NCBI GenBank assembly: GCA_025558095.1
Contig: JAIVFI010000043.1
Location: 62,001-126,000, forward strand
Length of the DNA stretch: 64,000 nt
Source of the DNA: Hyaloraphidium curvatum SAG 235-1
Lineage: Eukaryota > Fungi > Monoblepharomycota
Direction: 5' to 3'
Notes under the pieces: generated by a model
Database searches by the model: none
What the model was told of the DNA's origin: nothing
The model's input: only the letters and a program-made list of their open reading frames with translations
Translations under genes and position numbers: made by a program
Shown: positions 49,150 to 60,806 of the stretch, piece after piece
How the letters are laid out: each line of letters opens with the position of its first letter
Position numbering within the stretch: the first letter of the stretch is position 1

Positions 49150-49760
49150 CACAGGCGCTGAGCGCCCCCCAACCCCGATACATCACGTCACGCCATATAC
49201 ATTGAATTCGGGGAAGAGGGGAGGGGTTAGATGTCCGCCGAGCTGCGGGGTACAGGCTTCCTTGAACCTGTTCATAAGCTGTTGGCAACCCAGTACGCGC
49301 CCCCGCTGAACAACGGCGCGCAGACGGCCGGTCTGGCGGGCCATGAGACCATCGACATCCCAGTCTTTGCCGTCGGATTTGGTGCGCGGGGAAGAGATCT
49401 CTCGAGACCAAACACGAAGCTGTTCGTCCGCCGCGTCGTGCAGGCGGCCGAAGGTCGAGACCGCAAACCAAACGAGGTTGTGCACGGGGGGATCGGGAAC
49501 GTAGAACTGGTTGGCAAGGGCCGTCGCCCTTCTTCTGAACAGCGCGGCACAGGAGCGAGGTCTCGTTGCGGGAGTCCGTCGAGCGCGAGGCCGTGACGCT
49601 GGGGGTAACAACGGTGACGTCGACGAGGTCAGAACGAGCGCCCACGCGGCGGATGACGATGTCGGTCGAGGTTTTCCCGATGTCCAGGGCTCGTGCAAGT
49701 GTGGTGTCTTTGGGCACGAACCCATTCTCGAGGTAACCACGATGACGACGGTCGACGACC
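49150..49760 (-). mobile_element. CRE-like RLE non-LTR retrotransposon, 3' part (endonuclease region, frameshifted)
   Basis: TDIVI...LVDVTVVTP...KK / FAVSTFGRL, a PD-(D/E)xK-type region; continuous with 60427-60806 once the Gypsy element is removed. Confidence 0.75.
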
Positions 49761-50236
49761 TGCGACGGTCCGGGTCGGAACCGGGCCTGAAGCTCTAACC
49801 CGGCGCGCGAATCCCGCTCGGCTCTTCGGGTCGGATAGGCCCTGAATATGAATAAGCGAACAGCGCTGAAGATACTTGACTGTAGCCGGGGGAAAGAGGT
49901 TACGGGATGTCTCCCGGGGTGCGTCCCAAGGGCTCTCAGAACGAGGATCCGGCCGGGCGGGGTTCCGCACGGTGGTCGAACGACACGGAGAGCACGTAGA
50001 GTCAACTGGCGATCAAGATTGTACTGTTACATGTCCCGCTCTTTATATATCCCAGGAGGGTGGCTGTGCCGAGTCACTTGCGAGTCGCTCGCGAGTCGCT
50101 CGCGAGTGACTCGCGAGTCACTCGCGAGTCGATCGCGAGTCGATCACGAGTCGATCGCGAGGACCGACGCCTCCACGCCTCCGAACCGAAAATGAAAATA
50201 CCCTTGTCCGAATGTCAGACGTCCTGTACCTTCGCA
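49761..50236 (-). repeat. 3' LTR (476 bp)
   Basis: No differences from 59951-60426 on base-by-base reading. Confidence 0.97.
50042..50161 (-). promoter_or_regulatory. LTR U3 module: eight 11-bp palindromic units followed by TATA (copy at 60232-60351)
   Basis: (GAGTSRMTCGC)x8 at 50071-50161; ATATATAAAG on the minus strand about 20 bp downstream. Confidence 0.7.
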
Positions 50237-50257
50237 CGCCCCCACCCAAAAGAAGGC
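50237..50257 (-). other. 3' polypurine tract with upstream U-tract
   Basis: Minus strand CCTTCTTTTGGGTGGGGGCG directly abuts the 3' LTR TG. Confidence 0.8.
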
Positions 50258-50378
50258 GCCGCCCTCGGCGCCACGAAATCGAAGATCCTCCGCGGAGTGA
50301 CGTCATGCTTGCAGTAGAAGATGTTGAAGGCCGAGGTGGAGACAACAGATGTTGGAGAGTGTAGGGCCGAAGGGTGGC

Positions 50379-51644
50379 TTAGGCGTCCTCAAAGTCGACG
50401 TCGGCGTCCGCCTCGTCGTCGCTCGGCGGCGGGGCGCGGAGCCGGCGGGTAAAGCCGAGAGCGAAGGCGGCATGCACGGCTGAGCCGTCCGCGGCCGAGG
50501 GGGTGTAGACCGGGGGCATGGTCGACTTGTAGGGAGCGGCCGGGATGTCGTCGTACAGGGCGGCCAAGAGGCCGTCGTCCTGCGAGACGATGGAGGAGGC
50601 GTCGCTGCTGGACACGCTCTCGGGGCGAGGAGCTGGAGGTTGCATATCCCCAGCCTCATCGTCGGAGGTGACGAGGTCCTCGTCCTTGACGCGGCCGACC
50701 GGCGTGGAGGTGACCACGGCGGGCGTCGTTTGCCCCGCCAGGGGAGCCACTTGATTGCCGAGGAAGCGACGCAGGAGGGCCCGTTGCTCGTCGGCGGTCT
50801 TGGTGAAGTGCTCGCGCTGCGCGTTCAGGCCGGCCGTGAGGAGCGTGGTGTGGTCTTGAGCTGAAAGCATGAGCTGCTTGTGCTGCTCCGACCCAAATCG
50901 CTGCAGATGGGCCGCCAGGACGCTCTTGAGGTCGGCCGCAAACTCCGCCATGGGGCCATTGTTGTGACGGGCGAGATTGGTCTCGACGACGGTCTCGATG
51001 GTGGTTTCGAGGTTGGTCCCGGTCTGAGCAACCAGCCCGGCGAGGGAAGAGCCGAACTCCCTCAACTCCTCGATGGTAGCTTCGTCCACCAGGAGAATGC
51101 CGTTGAAGTTCTGACGTTGAGCCTCGAGCACCAACGCAAGCCGGTCGAGCTGCGTCTCGATGGCACCGAGACGAGCGTCGTCGGTCCGGCGCAAGGCGGT
51201 GACGGCGAACTCAAGTTCGCGGTGGCGGCCACTGAGGACCACCTGGAGCTCGTCACGCTGCTGGCGGATCTGGGCGTCCAGGCGGGCCTCTTGCTGCTCG
51301 AGCGTCGCCGTTACGCGGTCAAGAGCGTGCTGCTCCAGGTTGCCGACATTGACGAGGGTGTTGAGCACCGGGTGGAGTGCGTCGAGGGCTGCGCGGATGG
51401 GCATGACCGCGGAGAAGGCGGCCTGCTCGACCTTGTGCAAGTGGGCCGTCGTCTGGGAGTGTCTGACGTCGAGGTCGGCCCGGAGGTCGTCCAGCCGGGT
51501 CGAGAGGGAGGCAAGCGCCGACCGATAGTCCGGGGGTACGACGCCAGGCAACGCAGCGACGGGCGCAGTCGCCGGCGGCGGCGCCGTGGCCACATGCGGC
51601 CGGCGGGGCCGCAGGTTGTGGCCGGCAGTCGTGGGGGTCGCCAT
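50379..51644 (-). CDS. Retrotransposon accessory ORF (421 aa, coiled-coil, acidic tail)
   Basis: Intact ATG-TAA ORF between pol and the 3' LTR; long heptad-like helical core; no signal peptide or TM segment. Confidence 0.75.
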   Translation of the reverse strand: MATPTTAGHNLRPRRPHVATAPPPATAPVAALPGVVPPDYRSALASLSTRLDDLRADLDVRHSQTTAHLHKVEQAAFSAVMPIRAALDALHPVLNTLVNVGNLEQHALDRVTATLEQQEARLDAQIRQQRDELQVVLSGRHRELEFAVTALRRTDDARLGAIETQLDRLALVLEAQRQNFNGILLVDEATIEELREFGSSLAGLVAQTGTNLETTIETVVETNLARHNNGPMAEFAADLKSVLAAHLQRFGSEQHKQLMLSAQDHTTLLTAGLNAQREHFTKTADEQRALLRRFLGNQVAPLAGQTTPAVVTSTPVGRVKDEDLVTSDDEAGDMQPPAPRPESVSSSDASSIVSQDDGLLAALYDDIPAAPYKSTMPPVYTPSAADGSAVHAAFALGFTRRLRAPPPSDDEADADVDFEDA

Positions 51645-51713
51645 GGGAGACGGTAGCGGCGAGGTCGACGTTGGGTGCGTAGTCCGCGGCCGCGGCCTCC
51701 TGTGGTCCGCCGC

Positions 51714-51883
51714 TTATATGGTGCGAAGCGCAGGCAACTCGCGAGTGCATCGCAAGTCGCTCGCGAGTGACTTGCGAGCGACTCGCGAGTGACTCGCGAG
51801 TGACTCGCGAGTCACTTGCGAGTCAACCGCGAGCCAACCGCGAGTCAACCGCGAGTCAACTGCGAGTCGAGTCGACCGCGAGT
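51714..51883. promoter_or_regulatory. Putative internal (bidirectional) promoter: about 13 11-bp ACTCGCGAGT-type units plus TATA
   Basis: Array at 51735-51883 with the same unit as the LTR array; CATATAAG on the minus strand at 51713-51720, about 70 bp before the accessory ORF ATG. Confidence 0.65.
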
Positions 51884-52023
51884 TCGCCCGCACACCGGGT
51901 CACCAGTCCCCGCCACGGGGGACGGGGCGCGAGCGAGGGCCGTACGCCATTGCGTCGACGAAAGCGCTCGCGGGGGATCGCGACGTAGGGTCCAGAAGAG
52001 CTGGGGGGATCTCCGCGCCTGTC

Positions 52024-53009
52024 ATGAGTGCGGAGCTGCCGAACGTCGTCCCGCCGAGTTCGTGGTTCGAGGTTCGGTTGCCGACCTTCGACGTCCTGCT
52101 GTGCACCAAGGTAAGAGCGTAGCGGCGTGGTCCTCGAACGGGAGCTCAGCGCCGCGCCAGGAGGACGACGTGGTCGACTGCTTCCTGCAACTGGTGCGTC
52201 TGGCCGCCATGCGCGGGATGTTGCCGCTGGCCGAAGAGGCTGGGAACGTCGTTGTCGAGGTCCGAGTGCTCCGTCGGCTCGTCGCCGAGCTGCGCGAGGC
52301 CGGCGGGACCGCCAAGCTGCGCGAGGCTGGCGGGGCCAGAGGCAACGACCCGATCGCGGCCGCGGCCGCAACCCGGACCTCCGGCGTCTTCCTGCCGGCG
52401 ATGTCGTCGAAGGGTGCGCCTTCCGTCGGCGAGGGCGAGTCGGCGGCGGACTCGAGGGAGGAGCTCGAGGCGGCCGACGAAGTCCCCGTGCTGTCAGTCA
52501 CGCTTCATGCGCCCTCTTGGGAGCTGGACCACTTAGGCGACTTCGAGGCCGCCACTGAACAAGGGAGCGCCTTCCAGACGGCCCAAACGGCAACTTCAGG
52601 TAAAGACGAGGGGCATGTGGTGCAGCGCGGGGAGGCCCGGGAGCAGATTGCGCAGGTGAACGGCTCGACGGGAGTACGCCCCACAAGCGCTGATCGTCAC
52701 TGAATGTGCCAGATGAAGAAGTCGTCGCCGGTCTGGGGCTTGAAGGCGGAACGGGTGACGAAGAAGGTCCCTGATGCCGTGCCGGCAGGCTCCTTCCTCC
52801 GATGGAAGATTGCCGGAACGTACGCCGGCGAACTGTACCGGAGCCCCACCAAGGGCGAAGTGGCGGTATGCTCGTTCCCGTGGTGCCATCTGGTAAAGCA
52901 CAAGGCTAAGGGCCTCCTGGGCAATCTGAACACGCATTTTCAGTCCGGGTATCACAAGTTGGCGTTCGAGGGGGTCGAGGATAGGCTCGAGGTAGTACGT
53001 CGGGTTTGA
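52024..53009 (+). CDS. Antisense, spliced gene within the retrotransposon; about 298 aa with a C-terminal BED-type zinc finger
   Basis: Exons 52024-52110, 52161-52673, 52713-53009. Introns AAG|GTAAGA..CAG (50 nt) and GGA|GTACGC..GCTGAT..CAG (39 nt), both phase 0. SSPVW...CSFPWC...GNLNTHFQSGYH. Confidence 0.65.
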
Positions 53010-53079
53010 GTCAGTGAAAAGCCGGGGATCGGAGCACAGAGATGGTAGTGCTGTGACCGGATAGACGTCGTTGGTGTTA

Positions 53080-56000
53080 CTAGCGACGCCGAGTCCGCAT
53101 GCGCCTGGGGAGACCCGTCGGGAGCTGGAGACCAACGCGATCGGCATAGGCGCGGACGATCCCTATGGCGCCGTGCAACATGTCCAGAGGGAGCTTGGTC
53201 GTGCGAGCGAAGCCCCGCCACTTGACCTCGAACTTGAGTCCGTGACCCTGGCCCTCGTGGCCGACGATGTCCTCGACGGTGTACTCCTGCTCGTTCCCAA
53301 GCGCGTTCTCGACCTCGATTTCCTCTTCGAACTCGTTCACCGGTTCCGAGAGATCGAGCTCTTCACCGGCGGCGAGCTCCGGGGCGCGTGCGTTCCACGA
53401 GCGCGCGTTGAAGGTGGCCGACTCCCAAGGCTTGTAGCGCGCCAGCCGGTCCACATGCACAGTGGTGACGTGGTCGGTCTCGTAGACGTGTCTACACTTC
53501 CAGGTGAGCTCGGTGTGGCCTGACTCCTCGATGCGGTAGGGCCCAAGATAACGAGAGACGAACTTGCCCGGCTCGCCCTTGCGCGGTCGTTCTGGTCCCC
53601 AGATGAGCACGAGGTCGCCGGGGCGGAAGGTAATCGGAAGCCGGGTAGCGTTGGCCTTGGCGTTCCGAGTCTCCGCCGCTGCGGCCATCTTCTCGGCCAC
53701 CAGGTCGTAGGCCGCACGAAGCTGCGCCACGAGCTCCACGACGTAGGTCCGCCGGCGCTCATCCTCTGTCTTCTTGTCCTCCTCGTCGCTGGCCCGCAGG
53801 TGCACTGGCTCGCGAATCTCGGTCTCGTCGTAAAGTAGGTCGAGCGGAATACGAGCATCCCGACCATGCATCAGAAAGAACGGAGTTTCGCCGGTCGTCG
53901 CGTGGATGGAGGTCCGGAAGGCAAAGATGACCCCCACGATGTCCTCGTCCCATGTCTGGTAGTTCTTGGAGACCGCTGCGCTCAGGGCGTCGATGATCCA
54001 CCGGTTCGGGCGCTCCGCGAGGGAAGCCCTGGGATGCCCAACCGTGACCAGGCCCCGGTTGATGCCGAGTAGCTTGAGCAGGTACTCCATGTAATGGTTG
54101 TCCAGGTTCGAGGCGTTGTCGTGGTGAATCCGCTTCGGAAGACCGTGCTCGAGAATCCATCGCGTATAGAGCAGCTTCGCCGTCGTCGGCCCAGAGAGGT
54201 CCGGAGTCGGATACGCCGCGACCCATTTAGTGAACGGATCGTAGACGACGAGAAGGTACTTGTTGCCGCGGGGCGTGGCCGGATTGATCTCGCCGATGTA
54301 GTCGATGTAGATGTCCTCGTTGGGACCTGTGAGAGGAACCGATTTCAGTAAGCCCTGGTTCGATACCGAAGGCATCTTCCGGGTCATGCATGTAAGGCAG
54401 GCTCGCGTCCAGCGGCGAACGTCGTGCGCCATGCCGACCCAATATACGCGGCGCCGCAGATTGCTGTACGCCCGGTGTCGCCCGACGTGCCCGCTCAGGG
54501 GATCGTCGTGCGCACGTTGCAGGTAGGCCTCCCTCAGCTCGTGCGGTATCACGAGCTGGGTGACCGGGATACGACGGGTACCAGTCGCGAGTACATCGCG
54601 CCGGCAGAGCACGCCGTCCGTAGCGAGGAAGTACTGCTCGCCGTACTTCTTGCAGAATTTGGCCAGATTCACGTTGGGAGGGAGCTCCCCGTCTCGCACG
54701 AAGCGGATCAGCGCGCTGGTCTCGACGTCGGCTTCTTGCACTTTGCGCAGGGCATCCCGGGATCTGACGTCGGCAAGGTCAATAGCACTGATGCCCCCGA
54801 CATCGGGTAGCACCTCAAGCAGTGCCGGATGAAGGAACGCCAGGTCTCGCTCAGGCACGTCTGCCGGGTCGACCTGTGCGTTCGTCGTTGGGATCGGCAG
54901 GAGGATCTGCGTCTCCGGTGCCGCAGCCTCGGGCAGGGTCCCCGGATCGCTCCACAGGGTTCCCTCCACTGCGGCAACCGTGGCCGGGAACTCCGTGCCA
55001 GACAGCACTCGCTCCATTGATTCACAATTGACTGAGGAACCCGCAGTAGCTCGTCCCGAGTCTGACTCGGTGACTGGGGTTGACGAAGAACGGGAAGTCT
55101 GACCGAGATCACTCCCGGAGAGGAATCCGGGCGCCCGTCCCCCCCCAGAAAAAGAAGAAAAAGGCAAGGGGTCGGGAGGGTTTGGGGGCCAAAAGGCAGG
55201 GATGTCCAAGATTTCCTCGGGGTCGCCCATAGGCACGTCCTCGTCGGGCGACGGCGCCACGAGCTGACGAGACAGGAAGTCGGCGTTGGAGTTCGCTTTG
55301 CCCGAGCGATGGATGATCTGGAACCTGAAGTCCGAGAGCCGGAGGATCCAGCGCTGTAGGCGGCCCGGCTTGGAGGTCTCCAAGAGCCATTTGAGGGCGC
55401 TATGGTCGGTGACCACCTCAAACTCGTCCCCGATCAAATACGCCCAGAAATGCTCGCATGCCCAAACAACGGCCAGGGCTTCGCGCTCCCGAGTGTCCCA
55501 CTTGCGCTCGTTCGGCTGCAGAGCGCGGCTGGCGTAGGCGATGACGTACTCCTTGCCATCGGAGTCCCGCTGGCTGAGCACCGCGCCGAGGCCGATATCG
55601 CTGGCATCCGTGAACAAGACGAAGCGCTTGGAAAAGTCGGGGCGACGGAGCACGGGCGCCGACGTAAGCCGTTCCTTTAGCATACGGAAGGCGGCCTCGC
55701 ATGCGTCGTCCCAGGCCCGAGAGACCGAGACGCCGTCCTGCGTCAGGCGGGTGAGCGGGCTGGCAATGTTGGCGTAGCCGGCAATGAAGGGGCGATAGTA
55801 GTTGGAGAGGCCGAGAAACGATTGGAGCTCCTTCTTGGTCGTTGGGCGGGGGAACTGGTCCACCGCGCGGGTCTTCTCGGGGTCGACCTTGAGGCCGTCG
55901 GCGGTGACGTAATGCCCGAGGTATTTGACCTCGCGGCGGAAGAACTTGCATTTGGCCAGCTTCAGAGTCATCCCGGCCTCGCGCAGTCGGTCAAAGAGGA

Positions 56001-58137
56001 GCTCCAGGTGCACGAGGTGCTCGTCGACCGTCTGCGAGAAGATAATGATGTCGTCGATGAAGACCACCAAGCAGTACCACTGGAGGCCGGCGAGGAGCTC
56101 GTCCATGATCCGAGCAAAGGTTGCAGGAGCGTTGGTAAAGCCCATGGCCATCCGCTCCCACTGGTAGAGACCGCGGTGCGTCGTGAAGGCCGTCTTTTCC
56201 TTGTCCTCGTCGGCCACCTCCACGTGCCAAAAGCCGGAGCGGATGTCGCAAACGCTCCACACCTTGGCCGCGCTGAGGAGAGCGAGAGTGTCGCTTGGGT
56301 TCTTCATCGGGTAGACGTCGCGCTTGGTGGCGGCGTTGAGCTTCCGGTAATCGATCACCAGGCGCCATTCGCCCGAGCCGTGCCCTTTTGGCACCATGAT
56401 GCAGGGCGTGGCCCAGGGGCTTCGCGAGGGGACGACTACGCCCTGCACGAGCAGGTCGTCGATGATCTTGTCCATTTCCCCGCGAAGCCGGAACGGGGTC
56501 CGGTACGGCATCTGGTGGATCGGCTTGAGGTCGCCCGTGTCGATCCGGAAGCGATGGTTGCGCAGCTTGCCGATCCAAGGACCAAACACGTCCCGGTAGC
56601 GGTCGCAGAGCTTATGGAAACGAGGTTTGTCCCCCTCGCTCAGGATCGTTTGGTCCATCTTGAGCTCGATAGCCTCGACCGGAGGAGGCTCCACGCCGGG
56701 AGGCTGAGGTGGTCCAATCGATCCCGGCGAGGGCACCGCGAACAGATCGATGGTCTCCTCGACCGTGAGCGTGGATTCGGCCGGTTCGGTGTGGGGCAGC
56801 TCGGGCTCCAGCATCGAGATCTGCGCGGGAGCCAGATACGTGGGCGGTTCCGGAGCGAGAAATCCAGGAATCCGCACGCGGAAGCGGCCGAGGTGGGTGC
56901 CCGGGCCGATCGTGACCGGTGTCGTCCCGTAGTTGCGGATGAGAATCGGCAGCCGACCGTCTCTGTCGGGCGTCGCCGACGGGATGATGAAGAGGCGATC
57001 GAACGGCGAAGTGTTCGGCGTCTCGATGACCCCTGTCAAGTCCATCTCCACGACGGTCGCCAAGGGAGTCGTCGGGGCCAGCTCAGCGGTGATCGAGACG
57101 TCCTCGTTGGGGTAGACCGTGATGGAGGTGGTTGAATGGAGCGGGGCGACCAGGTGTGATCCGAAGAGCGGTCGCGCAACAATGTGCATTGGCACGACGA
57201 CCCCCTCCGGATCGTCCTTGAAATAGAGGACCGGCGTCTCCCAGTCCATCTGAACGCGTAGGGCGGAGAGCCAAGGGGTGCCGAGGATCACGTCGTCCAT
57301 GAGACCGTCCATGATGGCGACGTCCATGACGCAGTGTTGATTCCCGACCAGGATGTCCATCTTAGCAACTCCGCGGACCCACATGGTTCCGCCGGCCGCG
57401 GCCGTGCTGAGGGTGCCGAGTGTCCATGGTTTGATCGGTGGCGACGGGTGGATCCGGCAGAAGAAGGACGACCGAACCGCCACCACTGAGGCACCGGAGT
57501 CGACGAGGGCCGCGGGGGTATTCACGCCGTTGACCCATGCCGAAACGCGTGCCGCCTGATAGTGGAACTGCACTTGCGAAGTCCACGTCCAGCGATCCGG
57601 CGGAGGGGCGACCGGAGCAGGTGGCCGCGGGCGAGGCCGAGGGCCAGGCAGCGGTGGTCGTGCGTAGGCGGAAGGAGGAGGGGGCCTTTCGAAAGGTCCG
57701 GGAACGGCGCGGACGGTCGGGCCCTCGTGCATAGGTGCATCCGCTGATCCCGCGTCCGCATCCTGTGCCGCCGGTTCACCGTTTCCCACGACCTCGACCG
57801 AGCCGGGCGACGCCGAATCCGCTGCCGGCGGCGGGGCCAGGGTCTCGTCGATCGGCATGAGCGCCTCCCGCTGCTGACGAACGGCGGCCTGTCGAGCTGC
57901 CTCCGCCTCGAGGAAGAGGATGTACTCCGTGCCCCCGAAGGGCCAATGATGAACGTGGTCCTCCGCCGTCGGTTCATCGGTCGCGGAATCCGACAACTCC
58001 GGCGATCCGCCAGGAGATGAAGGGTCCGTGCCGTCCGGCAGCGGGGAAGTTCCAGGAAGAGGTTCCACATGTGGTTCAAGAGCTTGGATCTCTGCCCCCC
58101 TATGGCCGTGCGGCACTGAGGGCAAAGCTAGTTTTTT
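53080..58137 (-). CDS. pol: Pol polyprotein: PR, RT, RNase H, integrase, chromodomain (via -1 frameshift)
   Basis: LVDSGAS; WRLVIDYRKLN, MGFTNAP, FIDD; TDAS, EREALA, TDH; HHCC and D-D-E; EYTVEDIVGH...FEVKWRGF. Confidence 0.96.
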   Translation of the reverse strand, partial: KKLALPSVPHGHRGAEIQALEPHVEPLPGTSPLPDGTDPSSPGGSPELSDSATDEPTAEDHVHHWPFGGTEYILFLEAEAARQAAVRQQREALMPIDETLAPPPAADSASPGSVEVVGNGEPAAQDADAGSADAPMHEGPTVRAVPGPFERPPPPSAYARPPLPGPRPRPRPPAPVAPPPDRWTWTSQVQFHYQAARVSAWVNGVNTPAALVDSGASVVAVRSSFFCRIHPSPPIKPWTLGTLSTAAAGGTMWVRGVAKMDILVGNQHCVMDVAIMDGLMDDVILGTPWLSALRVQMDWETPVLYFKDDPEGVVVPMHIVARPLFGSHLVAPLHSTTSITVYPNEDVSITAELAPTTPLATVVEMDLTGVIETPNTSPFDRLFIIPSATPDRDGRLPILIRNYGTTPVTIGPGTHLGRFRVRIPGFLAPEPPTYLAPAQISMLEPELPHTEPAESTLTVEETIDLFAVPSPGSIGPPQPPGVEPPPVEAIELKMDQTILSEGDKPRFHKLCDRYRDVFGPWIGKLRNHRFRIDTGDLKPIHQMPYRTPFRLRGEMDKIIDDLLVQGVVVPSRSPWATPCIMVPKGHGSGEWRLVIDYRKLNAATKRDVYPMKNPSDTLALLSAAKVWSVCDIRSGFWHVEVADEDKEKTAFTTHRGLYQWERMAMGFTNAPATFARIMDELLAGLQWYCLVVFIDDIIIFSQTVDEHLVHLELLFDRLREAGMTLKLAKCKFFRREVKYLGHYVTADGLKVDPEKTRAVDQFPRPTTKKELQSFLGLSNYYRPFIAGYANIASPLTRLTQDGVSVSRAWDDACEAAFRMLKERLTSAPVLRRPDFSKRFVLFTDASDIGLGAVLSQRDSDGKEYVIAYASRALQPNERKWDTREREALAVVWACEHFWAYLIGDEFEVVTDHSALKWLLETSKPGRLQRWILRLSDFRFQIIHRSGKANSNADFLSRQLVAPSPDEDVPMGDPEEILDIPAFWPPNPPDPLPFSSFSGGGRAPGFLSGSDLGQTSRSSSTPVTESDSGRATAGSSVNCESMERVLSGTEFPATVAAVEGTLWSDPGTLPEAAAPETQILLPIPTTNAQVDPADVPERDLAFLHPALLEVLPDVGGISAIDLADVRSRDALRKVQEADVETSALIRFVRDGELPPNVNLAKFCKKYGEQYFLATDGVLCRRDVLATGTRRIPVTQLVIPHELREAYLQRAHDDPLSGHVGRHRAYSNLRRRVYWVGMAHDVRRWTRACLTCMTRKMPSVSNQGLLKSVPLTGPNEDIYIDYIGEINPATPRGNKYLLVVYDPFTKWVAAYPTPDLSGPTTAKLLYTRWILEHGLPKRIHHDNASNLDNHYMEYLLKLLGINRGLVTVGHPRASLAERPNRWIIDALSAAVSKNYQTWDEDIVGVIFAFRTSIHATTGETPFFLMHGRDARIPLDLLYDETEIREPVHLRASDEEDKKTEDERRRTYVVELVAQLRAAYDLVAEKMAAAAETRNAKANATRLPITFRPGDLVLIWGPERPRKGEPGKFVSRYLGPYRIEESGHTELTWKCRHVYETDHVTTVHVDRLARYKPWESATFNARSWNARAPELAAGEELDLSEPVNEFEEEIEVENALGNEQEYTVEDIVGHEGQGHGLKFEVKWRGFARTTKLPLDMLHGAIGIVRAYADRVGLQLPTGLPRRMRTRRR
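58090..58137 (-). promoter_or_regulatory. -1 ribosomal frameshift signal
   Basis: A AAA AAC heptamer immediately before the gag TAG, followed by a 10-bp stem CTTTGCCCTC/GGGGGCAGAG. Confidence 0.8.
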
Positions 58138-59783
58138 GGCATCGAAGGGGTGTTGCCGAGGCGAGACTTCCAGTTGAGTGGGCGGCGGTTGGCATTCTTC
58201 TCCAACTCCCAGCACTCGTCCTGAGCATGCCCATCCATGCCACAGAGATGGCAGTGGCGAGGCTGGAAGCGCTTCTGGTCGCGGTACTCCGAGGTGAAGG
58301 GCCGGCGATCCTGGCGCTCCTGCTGCTGGCGGGGCCGATCGATCGGAGGAGGCCTCGCGGGGGGGTTCGACCTGGTCTCCGCGGCCTGAACCTGATGGCG
58401 AGGCGACGGCAGCAGCTTGGTGATGAGCTCCTTGATCTCGACGAGGTCGCTGTTCGGCCCCGAAGGCGGCAACGGCTGGCTCCGACGAGACTGGAAGGGG
58501 ACGAAACGGCGCGGAGGCCGGAACGCAGACTCCCCCGGCGGTCCACCGGTGGGCCTGCGCTCTCCCTTAGGCTCCAGCAGCTTTGTGAGAGCCTGCGTAT
58601 GAGCCAGCAGCACTTCCGTCGTCGCCTTGTCGGTCGCCTTGGAGGAGCCCGAAGACGAGTGCTGGCCGACCAGAGCCGGAATCTCCGAAATCGAGTTCTG
58701 GCCCAGGAAACGGATGTCGCGCGGCTGCGCAGGGCCCGATGCTTGCATGACGGTGCGCATCTTCTCGATGACCTTGGTGACGGAAGTGCGGTTGATGAGG
58801 TGATCCCCGAGGAGCTCCAGCGCCTTCCCGCGTAGCTCCGGGCGCAGTCCGTAGAGCAGGTTCTGGCCGTACACGCTGTCTTGCACTTCCCTGGTAGGAA
58901 GCTGATCGCCGCAGTGCGAGAGGAAACGCGTCTCGGCCAGGGATACGCGGGCAACGAAGGCGTCGAGGGTCTCATCGTTGGTCATCTGAATCGTGTTGTA
59001 GTGCCGGCGATAATGCATCGATGCGTCGCGGGGCTCGAAGTGGTAGCGTAGCCAGGCAAGCACATCGTTCTGGGTCACCGGAGGATAGGTGGCCGTCGCG
59101 GGATAGTCCGGAGGGCGGTTCTGCGGCGTGATGTTGTGCCACATTGCGCGCGGCAGAGGCCCAAGGAAGACCGGGAAGACCTTGACGAGGTTGTTGATGG
59201 AGCCGAACGCCGTGAGAACCGTAGTGAGGTCGCGGAAGAAGTCTTCCGGGTCCTGCGTAGCGGGATCGAAGGGCTGAACAGAAGCAGGCAGCAGCTGAGC
59301 CGGGAGCTTGGCGGCTCCGCCCTGGCGATCCGCCTGGGGGAGGCCGGTGCTTCCATCGTTCGGCGGCTGAGCGCCAACGATGGCCCGTACGGCGTCGACG
59401 AACTGCTGCGGCTGGAGACCAGCGGCGGCAGCGTTGACAGCCGGGGCTTGCTCGCTCCGCTGACCCTGCTGCTGTGCGGCGAGCTGCTGGAGCTGCTGCG
59501 CTGCAAGCTGCTCGGCGGCGGCTTGCTGTTGAACTTGGGCAGCTGGCAACTGCTGAGCGGTCTGTTGCGCCACGAGCTGAGCGGCAAGCTGATCGGCGAC
59601 GGCTTGCTGGGCGGCTTGCTGGGCGGCGAGTTGGGCGACGTCGTTGGCGGCGGCGCCGACTTGCTGGATCGCGGCCTGCGCAGCTTGGATAATCGCCTGG
59701 GCCTGCGGGTTGTTCTGCAAATCGTTAGCTTCCTGAGGCTGCTGAACCTCCTGCTGAGGGGCGGCTTCTTGAACGGGGTCCAT
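58128..59783 (-). CDS. gag: Gag with Q/A-rich N-terminus and CCHC zinc knuckle
   Basis: First ATG at 59783 (MDPVQ); QMTNDETLDAF capsid-like motif; CHLCGMDGHAQDEC. Confidence 0.9.
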   Translation of the reverse strand: MDPVQEAAPQQEVQQPQEANDLQNNPQAQAIIQAAQAAIQQVGAAANDVAQLAAQQAAQQAVADQLAAQLVAQQTAQQLPAAQVQQQAAAEQLAAQQLQQLAAQQQGQRSEQAPAVNAAAAGLQPQQFVDAVRAIVGAQPPNDGSTGLPQADRQGGAAKLPAQLLPASVQPFDPATQDPEDFFRDLTTVLTAFGSINNLVKVFPVFLGPLPRAMWHNITPQNRPPDYPATATYPPVTQNDVLAWLRYHFEPRDASMHYRRHYNTIQMTNDETLDAFVARVSLAETRFLSHCGDQLPTREVQDSVYGQNLLYGLRPELRGKALELLGDHLINRTSVTKVIEKMRTVMQASGPAQPRDIRFLGQNSISEIPALVGQHSSSGSSKATDKATTEVLLAHTQALTKLLEPKGERRPTGGPPGESAFRPPRRFVPFQSRRSQPLPPSGPNSDLVEIKELITKLLPSPRHQVQAAETRSNPPARPPPIDRPRQQQERQDRRPFTSEYRDQKRFQPRHCHLCGMDGHAQDECWELEKNANRRPLNWKSRLGNTPSMPKN

Positions 59784-59931
59784 GTTTGGCGAAGGGGAAT
59801 GAACTTGGTTGACGGAATACGGTTGACAGAAAAGAGTGGCAGTCGACAAGCGCCGGTGCCAGGCGAAGTTGTTTTTGGATTATCGAAGTCGAAACTGAAG
59901 TCGAACGAGGTGTCGAAGACCCGAGAGCAGG

Positions 59932-59949
59932 ATCACGGAGGTCGGACCA
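59932..59949 (-). other. Primer binding site, probably tRNA-Tyr
   Basis: TGGTCCGACCT starts 1 nt after the 5' LTR and is complementary to a tRNA 3' end AGGUCGGA-CCA, as in plant-type tRNA-Tyr(GUA). Confidence 0.65.
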
Positions 59950-59950
59950 G

Positions 59951-60426
59951 TGCGACGGTCCGGGTCGGAACCGGGCCTGAAGCTCTAACCCGGCGCGCGA
60001 ATCCCGCTCGGCTCTTCGGGTCGGATAGGCCCTGAATATGAATAAGCGAACAGCGCTGAAGATACTTGACTGTAGCCGGGGGAAAGAGGTTACGGGATGT
60101 CTCCCGGGGTGCGTCCCAAGGGCTCTCAGAACGAGGATCCGGCCGGGCGGGGTTCCGCACGGTGGTCGAACGACACGGAGAGCACGTAGAGTCAACTGGC
60201 GATCAAGATTGTACTGTTACATGTCCCGCTCTTTATATATCCCAGGAGGGTGGCTGTGCCGAGTCACTTGCGAGTCGCTCGCGAGTCGCTCGCGAGTGAC
60301 TCGCGAGTCACTCGCGAGTCGATCGCGAGTCGATCACGAGTCGATCGCGAGGACCGACGCCTCCACGCCTCCGAACCGAAAATGAAAATACCCTTGTCCG
60401 AATGTCAGACGTCCTGTACCTTCGCA
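59951..60426 (-). repeat. 5' LTR (476 bp)
   Basis: Identical to 49761-50236. Confidence 0.97.
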
Positions 60427-60806
60427 GACCACGCCACGGGAGGCGAGCTTGTCCTTGAGCTCATCCGCCAACGCAGATTCAAGCGCGTTGTGCCGCGCAA
60501 CCTTGCCCATTATCGGGCACGTGAAGGCGTGCAGGAAGTCGGCTCCCCGCGGCGCAAGGATGCGTGTGACCTGCCTGCCACTGCCGTCATCGACAGTGCA
60601 CCCGAGCGGGCAGAGCATCTGCGATGGTAGGGCCGAGAGCCAAGGGGCAGGGAGACCGAGGTCGGTACAGATGTTCAGCTGCAACGCCTCGTCGTCCAGG
60701 CCGAATCATCACGCTTTCCGTTGAATTTTGGCTTTCCACCAACTGGCGGGCAGGCGACGATGGTCCGGTGGGTTTGGAGCTCAGGGCCCAGCTTGCCCCG
60801 CCGTCT
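60427..60806 (-). mobile_element. CRE-like RLE non-LTR retrotransposon, upstream part (CCHC and RHN region), 5'-truncated
   Basis: GASWAL..P, DLGLP, CPLGC...HAFTC...RHNAL; the empty site reads KLASRGVV-VDRRHRGYL in frame. Confidence 0.75.

Follow-up and report, generated by a model that had tools for sequence, protein, structure and literature searches.

A 'complex' Ty3/Gypsy element of the fungus Hyaloraphidium curvatum with matching tandem arrays in its LTRs and at a putative internal promoter

Does a fungal LTR retrotransposon carry its own regulatory genes, and with them the DNA sites on which their products might act? Regulatory accessory genes are textbook knowledge for complex retroviruses and are merely suspected for the plant Retand elements, and to our knowledge the LTR elements of fungi are seen as simple gag-pol units. 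The question was raised by a stretch of 64,000 nucleotides of the genome of Hyaloraphidium curvatum (the window in the following), for which an initial annotation had proposed a Gypsy element with the same short repeats in its LTRs and in its interior, and with a divergent spliced gene for a zinc-finger protein beside the internal repeats.

The window contains a Ty3/Gypsy chromovirus-like element of 10,666 bp on the minus strand, extending from position 49761 to 60426. Features of this copy, which belongs to a family termed A here, are collected in Table 1. The two LTRs are 100% identical in the LTR alignment, and both are flanked by the target-site duplication GACC at 49757–49760 and 60427–60430. 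Within the pol product, Pfam placed Asp_protease_2 at residues 224–315, RVT_1 at 609–769, RT_RNaseH at 860–963, Integrase_H2C2 at 1223–1281 and rve at 1297–1395, and this order of protease, RT, RNase H and integrase is the one expected of Ty3/Gypsy elements. A weak match to the chromodomain (PF00385, residues 1645–1670) had an E-value of 0.022 and, with 15.1 bits, stayed below the cut-off of 25.1 bits. The limits of U3 and R in the 3' LTR were deduced from the position of the TATA box, and the polypurine tract was read directly. The element is a 'complex' Ty3/Gypsy chromovirus-like element and a young copy. A contig at position 49760 was considered as an 'empty site', indicative of an insertion polymorphism, and was rejected as such evidence because the flank itself is repetitive, with 11 or more copies.

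Table 1. Coordinates of the family A element and its features in the window.
Feature	Position	Strand	Description
5' LTR	59951–60426	-	476 bp, TG..CA ends; boundaries from alignment
U3 array, 5' LTR	60260–60351		8.4 units of 11 bp; sense-strand core ACTCGCG
LTR TATA boxes	60232–60239 and 50042–50049	-	TATATAAA; about 20 nt downstream of each U3 array
Putative primer-binding site	59932–59949	-	sense strand TGGTCCGACCTCCGTG; one base past the 5' LTR; placed without a tRNA match
gag-position ORF	58128–59849	-	without Pfam match
pol	53080–58215	-	protease, RT, RNase H, integrase, weak chromodomain match
Antisense exon 3	52713–53009	+	98 aa and stop; basic, pI 9.9; CCHH finger codons 52869–52955
Antisense intron 2	52656–52712	+	57 nt, GTGAAC..CAG; skipped in RNA contigs
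Antisense exon 2	52161–52655	+	165 aa; acidic, pI 4.6; contains a 27-nt tandem duplication
Antisense intron 1	52111–52160	+	50 nt, GTAAGA..CAG; skipped in RNA contigs
Antisense exon 1	52024–52110	+	29 aa; its ATG is the sole one between array and intron 1
Internal array	51737–51883		12–13 units of 11 bp; core and orientation as in U3
Internal TATA-like box	51713–51719	-	ATATAAG; 17 nt past the array, 75 nt before the ATG at 51644
Sense accessory ORF	50379–51644	-	421 aa; basic N-terminal tip, helical centre, acidic C-terminus with PPxY
Polypurine tract	50237–50256	-	sense strand TTTTGGGTGGGGGCG; adjoins the 3' LTR
U3 array, 3' LTR	50070–50161		8.4 units of 11 bp; identical to the 5' LTR array
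3' LTR	49761–50236	-	476 bp; U3 about 50236–50016, R-U5 about 50015–49761

The arrays were called with Tandem Repeats Finder, and its internal call (51737–51868) was extended to 51883. The internal array is one unit longer here than in most other copies and in the RNA contig. The repeat had been described as an 11-bp palindromic unit. Its 11-bp period was found as described, but the full palindrome is present only in the central units, and what is invariant in the unit is a core of fixed orientation, reading ACTCGCG on the element's sense strand. Allowing at most one mismatch, ACTCGCGAGT was found 18 times in the window versus 3.5 times expected, a count that 0 of 100 shuffles reached. As 16 of these 18 matches fall inside the three arrays, the claim that within the window the array is restricted to the LTR U3s and the internal site was upheld. 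Genome-wide, a two-unit array pattern yielded 400 matches versus 0 for the control; each of the 100 matches listed coincides with a known LTR or internal array, apart from a few additional arrays on C11. A TATA box on the minus strand about 20 bp after each array had also been noted, and distances of 17–20 nt were found. Such boxes are very rare in this GC-rich 64-kb window, with TATAWA present 4 times per strand and ATATAAG a single time. The orientation of the core relative to the TATA box is the same in U3 and in the internal array. The cis elements of U3 hence recur inside the element in core, period and orientation and with a TATA box following, and the internal array together with its box looks like a second LTR-type promoter.

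On its far side the internal array faces a divergent antisense gene, and its location between this spliced gene and the sense ORF of 421 aa, as proposed by the initial annotation, was borne out by contigs of one public RNA run, which prove both introns. These are plus-strand GT..AG introns, their joints are present in the RNA-derived contigs and in 0 genomic copies, and the spliced path alone was found at both of them, neither intron being covered by any contig. The run was available in the form of contigs, from which strand and expression level cannot be read. Contig depths were also considered as a sign of a subgenomic RNA and were not usable, with low depth over R-U5. Splicing of intron 2 takes out an in-frame stop codon (52701–52703), and the three exons join in frame (29+165+98 aa), with the basic CCHH finger at the end. 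The antisense gene is transcribed and is spliced at two introns into one frame of 292 aa. One of the contigs (RNA contig 2) runs unbroken from U3 via the array into exon 1, so that the start of the antisense RNA might lie further upstream, at the 3' LTR for instance.

A sister family, B (L031/L032 on contig C1), has the same layout. Its gag-pol is 84–99% identical to that of family A, and the identity falls to 40–55% exactly from the pol stop codon onward. In B an array and a TATA box are found in U3 and again internally, where they lie 80 nt ahead of an ORF of 420 aa, and the antisense gene consists of three exons with intron 2 at a position homologous to that in A. The core of the B arrays is ACGGCG in both U3 and the interior, versus ACTCGCG in A; in A the counts are 34 for its own core and 3 for the B core, and in B they are 16 for its own core and 2 for that of A. 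In each family, U3 and internal arrays share one core, and this core differs between the families. The sense ORFs of A and B are about 30% identical and the finger proteins 43–45%, with the CCHH residues conserved and with an acidic exon 2 and a basic exon 3 in A and B alike. As U3 array, internal array, finger protein and sense ORF all differ in B, arrays and accessory genes change as one module. The co-variation of array unit and finger gene among related elements, named as a check in the initial annotation, was thus observed for two families, in which cores and proteins changed jointly (n=2). It suggests, without proving it, self-regulation of the element.

Identities between A and B at the three codon positions were 0.47/0.62/0.43, with position 2 best conserved, and 20 of 42 identical residues were encoded by different codons. 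Together with the kept frame and exon plan this indicates selection on the antisense protein, and both accessory genes are under protein-level constraint in the sister family. As the identity within gag-pol is patchy, B may have arisen by recombination and have an older 3' module, and the joint divergence would then be explained by linkage. Family C, which is more distantly related, has an array of 11-bp period in U3 and none internally. At the equivalent location it contains an antisense ORF with a CCHH-like pattern, of which no other copies were found. The similarity of this ORF to the A and B fingers was not significant (z 1.05 and 0.31), and family C was dropped as a third data point for the co-variation on this ground.

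What kind of proteins are encoded by the two accessory genes? The description of the finger as BED-like was not supported: no Pfam match was obtained for A or B at E-values up to 10, and the finger has C-x4-C instead of C-x2-C. The spacing in A is C-x4-C-x16-H-x5-H, and A and B share the pattern C-x4-C-x16/18-H-x5-H as well as upstream Trp residues. The distance from Cys to His is closer to BED than to classical C2H2 fingers, whereas the Cys pair does not fit BED. The neighbours of the finger in a protein language model include zf-BED clusters, a lead only, and a profile scan (E up to 10) found zf-BED (PF02892) absent from the whole genome. Using the same limit, Pfam searches gave nothing meaningful for the three antisense exons, searched one by one, for the B protein P0002 and for the ORFs of family C. 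An exhaustive phmmer search with exon 3 in 1.84 billion proteins hit nothing but the paralogue in B and a single bacterial repeat protein, a spurious match. In word-seeded searches the B protein P0002 and the ORF of 421 aa each retrieved themselves alone, a metagenome scan with an A+B profile yielded no relative, a PDB profile search of the finger gave noise only, and an A+B HMM detected no additional paralogues in the own genome. Two AlphaFold models of exon 3 reached pLDDT values of 40 and 45.5, and both are unreliable; in the two-sequence model (mean pLDDT 45.5) both Cys lie in a hairpin and His75 lies in a helix. The ORF of 421 aa was also considered as an envelope protein, which was ruled out, as no hydrophobic or membrane segment was found.

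Taken as a whole, the region behind pol can be read as a promoter cassette with element-specific control, and we consider the chances of this reading to be even. The internal array and its TATA box would probably start a 3'-coterminal subgenomic mRNA for the protein of 421 aa. The same array may also serve the divergent, TATA-less antisense gene, the ATG of which is located 140–175 nt from the far edge of the array, and we lean slightly toward this view. With clearly more reserve, we propose that one accessory protein could bind the arrays and link both promoters by a feedback specific to the family, which might either activate or act against silencing. The antisense protein, with its acidic middle and basic C-terminal CCHH finger, would be the first choice for such a binder. 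Similarly tentative is the idea that LTR retrotransposons of this early-diverging fungus might carry exchangeable 'specificity modules', each made up of an element-encoded, sequence-specific factor and of matching arrays both in the LTR and at a bidirectional promoter inside the element.

For the arrays, a host factor is nearly as good an explanation. They could be enhancers for host transcription factors, with a different host factor for each family, and the internal copy would merely express the accessory genes, whose roles would lie elsewhere, for instance in nucleic-acid chaperoning, targeting, particle assembly (PPxY) or countering of host defence. Many retroelements have tandem enhancer repeats in U3 to which host factors bind, the U3 array of family C exists without an internal array or a demonstrable finger homologue, and the Pfam and profile searches assigned neither the antisense nor the 421-aa protein to a DNA-binding family. 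However, this explanation would need a simultaneous switch at both promoters between families of nearly the same gag-pol, alongside which the accessory proteins diverged to 30–45% identity. It also has to account for a two-unit pattern that is confined to arrays of this element among the 100 matches listed, and for an antisense protein with an activator-like layout of acidic part and basic finger in both families. We take it for a serious rival, although for the arrangement as a whole it strikes us as somewhat doubtful.

Two further explanations place the function in RNA. The antisense transcript might act mainly as RNA, by duplex formation or RNA interference, with the open frame being secondary. 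Ty1 antisense RNAs damp their element, the transcript here overlaps about 1.1 kb of the 3' part of the genomic RNA, and the contigs keep only the spliced path at both introns. Against this stand a reading frame preserved through both splice junctions, the exon plan and intron 2 position that B retains despite the divergence of the protein, the best conservation at codon position 2 and the different codons for about half of the identical residues, and we regard a mainly RNA-based role as improbable; an RNA role and a protein role of the antisense gene do not exclude each other. The arrays themselves could act at the level of RNA or cDNA, in dimerisation, packaging or strand transfer, and the TATA boxes would then be incidental. 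Folding of the A arrays is indeed much stronger than that of shuffled sequences (z -7.6 and -4.6), and the internal and U3 arrays of one RNA could pair. The self-complementarity of the B and C arrays, however, is not unusual (z 0.13, -1.75 and -1.3), so that across the families the location before a TATA box is conserved and the hairpin potential is not. All five arrays (5/5) precede a TATA-like box by about 10–20 nt, although such boxes are very rare in the window, and the genomic RNA does not include the 5' LTR copy of the U3 array. This explanation appears highly unlikely to us.

The system is compact, with two proteins, two promoters and an 11-bp motif, and the sister family represents a natural 'swap' that predicts cross-specificity. 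If the factor is encoded by the element, the retrotransposon would control its expression level or evade silencing independently of host factors. New families might then arise via a change of the recognition module with the replication machinery retained, and orthogonal protein-DNA pairs could be obtained. With true specificity modules, sister families of near-same gag-pol would be regulated or protected from silencing independently of each other, comparable to heteroimmune phages differing in repressor and operators. Should the arrays instead depend on a host factor, they would still provide strong and portable promoter elements for a lineage of fungi that has received little study.

Parts of this arrangement resemble known systems. 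In foamy viruses an internal promoter within env shares cis elements with the LTR U3, and Tas is encoded in sense. The likeness lies in a second promoter, putative in our case, that is internal, precedes the accessory genes at the 3' end and has cis elements of U3; through such shared elements one factor can drive both promoters. In contrast to these vertebrate retroviruses with their env promoter and sense Tas, we deal with a fungal Ty3/Gypsy element that lacks env, in which U3 and interior have an 11-bp tandem array in common and the candidate binder is encoded by a spliced antisense gene. HBZ of HTLV-1 is a spliced antisense bZIP gene transcribed from the 3' LTR, and the U3 of this virus contains 21-bp repeats. 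Both systems have a spliced antisense gene between structural genes and 3' LTR and tandem elements in U3. However, HBZ is a bZIP protein expressed from the 3' LTR, and the antisense protein here has an unclassified CCHH finger, a nearby array copy of its own and no Pfam family in common with HBZ. The Ty1 internal transcript Ty1i encodes the restriction factor p22, a truncated Gag from within gag. It offers a fungal LTR retrotransposon with self-regulation via an internally initiated transcript, but p22 is no separate accessory gene, and Ty1 has neither a shared enhancer array nor an antisense coding gene.

The plant Retand elements of the Tat lineage possess a long region between pol and 3' LTR with antisense ORFs predicted to be DNA-binding, and often family-specific tandem repeat arrays for which a regulatory role was proposed, as far as the passages on these features describe them (PMC11963269). 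An antisense putative DNA binder and tandem repeats between pol and 3' LTR are thus shared with the element described here. Differences are that Retand are plant non-chromovirus elements and that their ORFs carry TRP28 (PF04195), which, like any other Pfam family, was not present in the antisense ORF. The passages of the Retand paper retrieved by keyword mention no LTR-matching repeats, no repeats before a TATA box and no spliced antisense gene (PMC11963269). The initial annotation knew of no precedent in fungal LTR elements, and no such cassette is described in the keyword passages of a fungal survey or in the other literature searched; the general design, however, is known from Retand, so that the claim has to be limited to fungal elements. 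In the Arabidopsis VANDAL elements, an element-encoded protein, VANC, acts on short tandem-repeat motifs in the non-coding parts of its own family, and from one related family to the next both VANC and its motifs are markedly different (PMC5735166). VANDAL elements are DNA transposons without sequence relationship to the element of H. curvatum, and for VANC binding and loss of methylation were demonstrated. The divergence of core and protein between A and B looks the same, with tandem target motifs differing between related families along with the protein, in two families. If the reading of specificity modules is true, this would be the first self-recognition circuit of its type known from fungal retroelements, and retrotransposons would have their own equivalent of VANC and Tas.

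The repeat arrays and the two accessory genes belong to a Ty3/Gypsy chromovirus-like element, named family A, whose features are summarized in the table. The chromodomain match in its pol ORF was sub-threshold. Family A is very young, since the full 2.8-kb 3' region was found in at least 10 copies with 99-100% identity in the 31.9-Mb assembly, accompanied by shorter truncated matches. The 421-aa sense ORF is identical to an NCBI hypothetical protein of Hyaloraphidium curvatum across 80% of the ORF length. The copy in the window is nested in another repeat family (49300-49760 and beyond 60427). At least 11 copies of its left flank, 98-99% identical, are present in the genome, which explains why a contig of run X1, the sole public run holding this DNA and kept as contigs, joins both flanks without the element. 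On contig C11 (502000-535000, L012-L014) three A copies lie approximately 11,078 bp apart and have a common 2,039-bp deletion (window 52242-54280), by which the pol end and the greater part of the antisense gene were lost, with the array and the 421-aa ORF retained. Additional arrays of TCGCGAGTCGA units were found approximately 1.7 kb further along each of these repeats, and run X1 also contains the 2,039-bp-deleted form.

Features of the family A element in the window
Feature	Position	Strand	Remarks
LTR retrotransposon	49761-60426 (10,666 bp)	minus	finding sits in the 3' part of the element
LTRs	49761-50236, 59951-60426		476 bp each, 100% identical; TG start, CA end, GACC flanks
U3 arrays	50070-50161, 60260-60351		11-bp units, 8.4 each
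Internal array	51737-51883		11-bp units, 12-13
Antisense gene exons	52024-52110, 52161-52655, 52713-53009	plus	in frame, 29+165+98 codons
pol ORF	53080-58215	minus	protease, reverse transcriptase, RNase H, integrase zinc-binding and core domains
gag-position ORF	58128-59849		upstream of the pol ORF
Polypurine tract	adjoins the 3' LTR		read directly
Putative primer-binding site	after the 5' LTR		begins TGG; read directly

The arrays noted in each U3 and internally by the initial annotation were confirmed. Allowing up to one mismatch, the array 10-mer occurred 18 times in the window versus 3.5 times expected, nearly always inside the arrays. Genome-wide, a two-unit array pattern yielded 400 matches versus 0 for the control, and all of the 100 matches listed were located at A-family array positions or in a few extra arrays of C11. 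The unit had been described as palindromic, which holds in full for the central units only; common to all units is the oriented core ACTCGCG on the element sense strand, pointing in the same orientation toward the TATA box in the U3 and the internal array. TATA boxes had been placed about 20 bp past the arrays, and were indeed found as TATATAAA 20 nt after the U3 array and as ATATAAG 17 nt after the internal array, 75 nt before the ATG of the 421-aa ORF. Such boxes are very rare in the window, as at 65% G+C TATAWA occurs four times per strand, with all four minus-strand matches representing the two LTR boxes, and ATATAAG a single time. At 51780 the internal array is one 11-bp unit longer than in most genomic copies and in the RNA contig, hence the unit number is polymorphic among copies.

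The divergent antisense spliced gene proved to be real. The X1 contigs leave out 52111-52160 (50 nt) and 52656-52712 (57 nt), which are plus-strand GT..AG gaps. The second intron contains the only stop codon that separates the gene's two long open stretches, and splicing removes it. As sense RNA cannot lose antisense-strand introns and no copy without these stretches was found among the genome copies of the 3' region, plus-strand spliced RNA was demonstrated. No X1 contig extended over either intron, so spliced RNA was roughly as abundant as unspliced RNA or more so. Depths in these contigs, which carry neither strand nor end information, were 846 for U3, 611 for the 421-aa ORF, array and exon 1, 198 for exons 2-3 and 131-188 for pol. 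Summed contig depth over R-U5 (49849-50047) was only 10.8, with coverage ending approximately at the LTR TATA box. This dip may be an assembler artefact, or most RNA of the 3' part may not be LTR-initiated genomic RNA. Exon 2 contains an in-frame 27-nt tandem duplication (52283-52334), repeating the peptide AKLREAGG.

A paralogue of exon 3 with 45% identity was found on contig C1 as the annotated 274-aa protein P0002 in a sister element, family B (L031/L032, plus strand). Comparing A and B, gag-pol DNA identity is 84-99%, shifting between these values in blocks, which suggests recombination between the families. Exactly at the pol stop codon identity drops to 40-55%, and it remains that low across the accessory region and the greater part of the LTR. 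The layout is nevertheless the same. In B, three exons (23+131+120 aa) make up the antisense gene, separated by GT..AG introns of 90 nt and 51 nt, of which the second lies at the position homologous to that in A. The internal B array is followed by TATAAAG and the U3 array by TATATAAAA; a sense ORF of 420 aa starts approximately 80 nt after the internal array and its box. The B units of 9-11 bp carry an identical core, ACGGCG, in the U3 and internal arrays. The A core was counted 34 times in A versus 2 times in B, the B core 16 times in B versus 3 times in A. The B 5' LTR (C1:231587-231855 and 245772-245939) is split by an insertion of approximately 13.9 kb, which is accompanied by an 8-bp duplication and lies 8 nt after a TCTGAGA word, and approximately 450 bp at the pol ORF start, before the protease (window 57363-57963), are missing from B.

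Judged by sequence comparison, the accessory proteins of A and B are under constraint. Codon position 2 is best kept (0.62 versus 0.47 and 0.43), and 20 of the 42 identical residues are encoded by different codons. Both finger proteins retain the pattern C-x4-C-x16/18-H-x5-H, with an acidic exon 2 (pI about 4.5) and a basic exon 3 (pI 9.4-9.9). Both sense ORFs show the basic motif LRPRRxHVA in their N-terminal part and PPxY within an acidic block in their C-terminal part; their helical centres diverged (about 30% identity overall); a membrane segment was found in neither. The finger had been called BED-like, but an assignment to zf-BED was not supported: Pfam gave no match for A, B or C at E up to 10, the A exons being searched one by one, a BED profile had no match in the whole genome, and a profile search of solved structures returned only noise. 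Language-model neighbours of the A and B fingers include BED-finger clusters, and in a low-confidence model both cysteines lie in a hairpin, with the first histidine in a helix; these two points are leads rather than tests. In the data at hand, the finger family seems confined to Hyaloraphidium curvatum.

In the more distant family C (contig C27), the pol C-terminus is 70% identical in protein and the LTRs are 98.5% identical to each other. Its U3 holds an 11-bp array of CTGATCCCGAT units followed by a TATA-like box. The gap between pol and the 3' LTR is only about 770 bp and has no internal array; it contains (L042:1653-2304 = C27:449653-450304) a compact head-to-head pair, namely an antisense ORF of 118 aa showing a CCHH-like pattern (C-x3-C...H-x4-H) and a 99-aa sense ORF with an acidic end rich in Pro/Tyr, their start codons overlapping in one CATG. 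The antisense ORF is a positional analogue only, as its similarity to the A/B finger was not significant. In a fourth, degenerate family (L043:1400-2300 = C2:652400-653300), whose pol C-terminus contains stop codons and is 68% identical, a remnant showing a Cys...Cys...His...His pattern lies on the antisense strand directly after pol, and no tandem array was found in the 9 kb examined. The 11-bp U3 array looks ancestral to the lineage, the internal copy being part of an enlarged A/B cassette. The array of the adjacent 3' LTR may at first have served the antisense gene, as the 3' LTR does for HBZ in HTLV-1; with growth of the sense ORF, another copy of the array would have kept an array beside the antisense gene and given the sense ORF its own TATA box.

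A promoter cassette is the best-supported reading of these data. Array plus TATA box would form an LTR-type promoter, present a second time within the element, where it would fire the sense accessory mRNA and probably serve the divergent antisense gene too. It is likely that the internal array and TATA box act as a promoter. An action of the arrays at the RNA level is unlikely, since only A shows strong self-complementarity (z -7.6 and -4.6), not B or C, whereas every one of the five arrays keeps its position ahead of a TATA box. That the antisense transcript acts purely as RNA is unlikely, as this does not agree with the conservation at the protein level, although an RNA role may exist alongside one of the protein.

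U3 and internal arrays match within A and within B and differ between these families, as do the accessory proteins. Between near-identical backbones, this points to one trans factor on both promoters, and as proteins and arrays changed together, an element-encoded factor would be the simplest explanation, the prime candidate being the antisense protein, which combines an acidic region with a basic finger. We put forward only tentatively that the array binder is encoded by the element itself. Co-variation of array and finger, proposed as a check in the initial annotation, was observed between two families, A and B, where cores and accessory proteins both changed. The main rival is a host factor acting on the arrays. 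In its favor, family C has an array without the cassette, tandem U3 enhancers recognized by host proteins are widespread, and family B could be a recombinant whose 3' module as a whole is simply older; a host factor appears possible, if somewhat doubtful. The system is of value because A and B form a natural swap that permits a sharp and cheap experimental test.

No description of a comparable cassette was found in the parts of the literature on fungal LTR elements that were covered. Functionally, the layout has parallels in four known systems: foamy virus, with its internal promoter and Tas; HTLV-1, with HBZ and U3 repeats; VANDAL/VANC, where the targets are tandem repeats which differ between related families (PMC5735166); and plant Retand elements. 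The A/B element belongs to none of these families. Among the publications covered, Retand is the closest retrotransposon case, with antisense ORFs that putatively bind DNA and with tandem repeats in the stretch from pol to the 3' LTR (PMC11963269).
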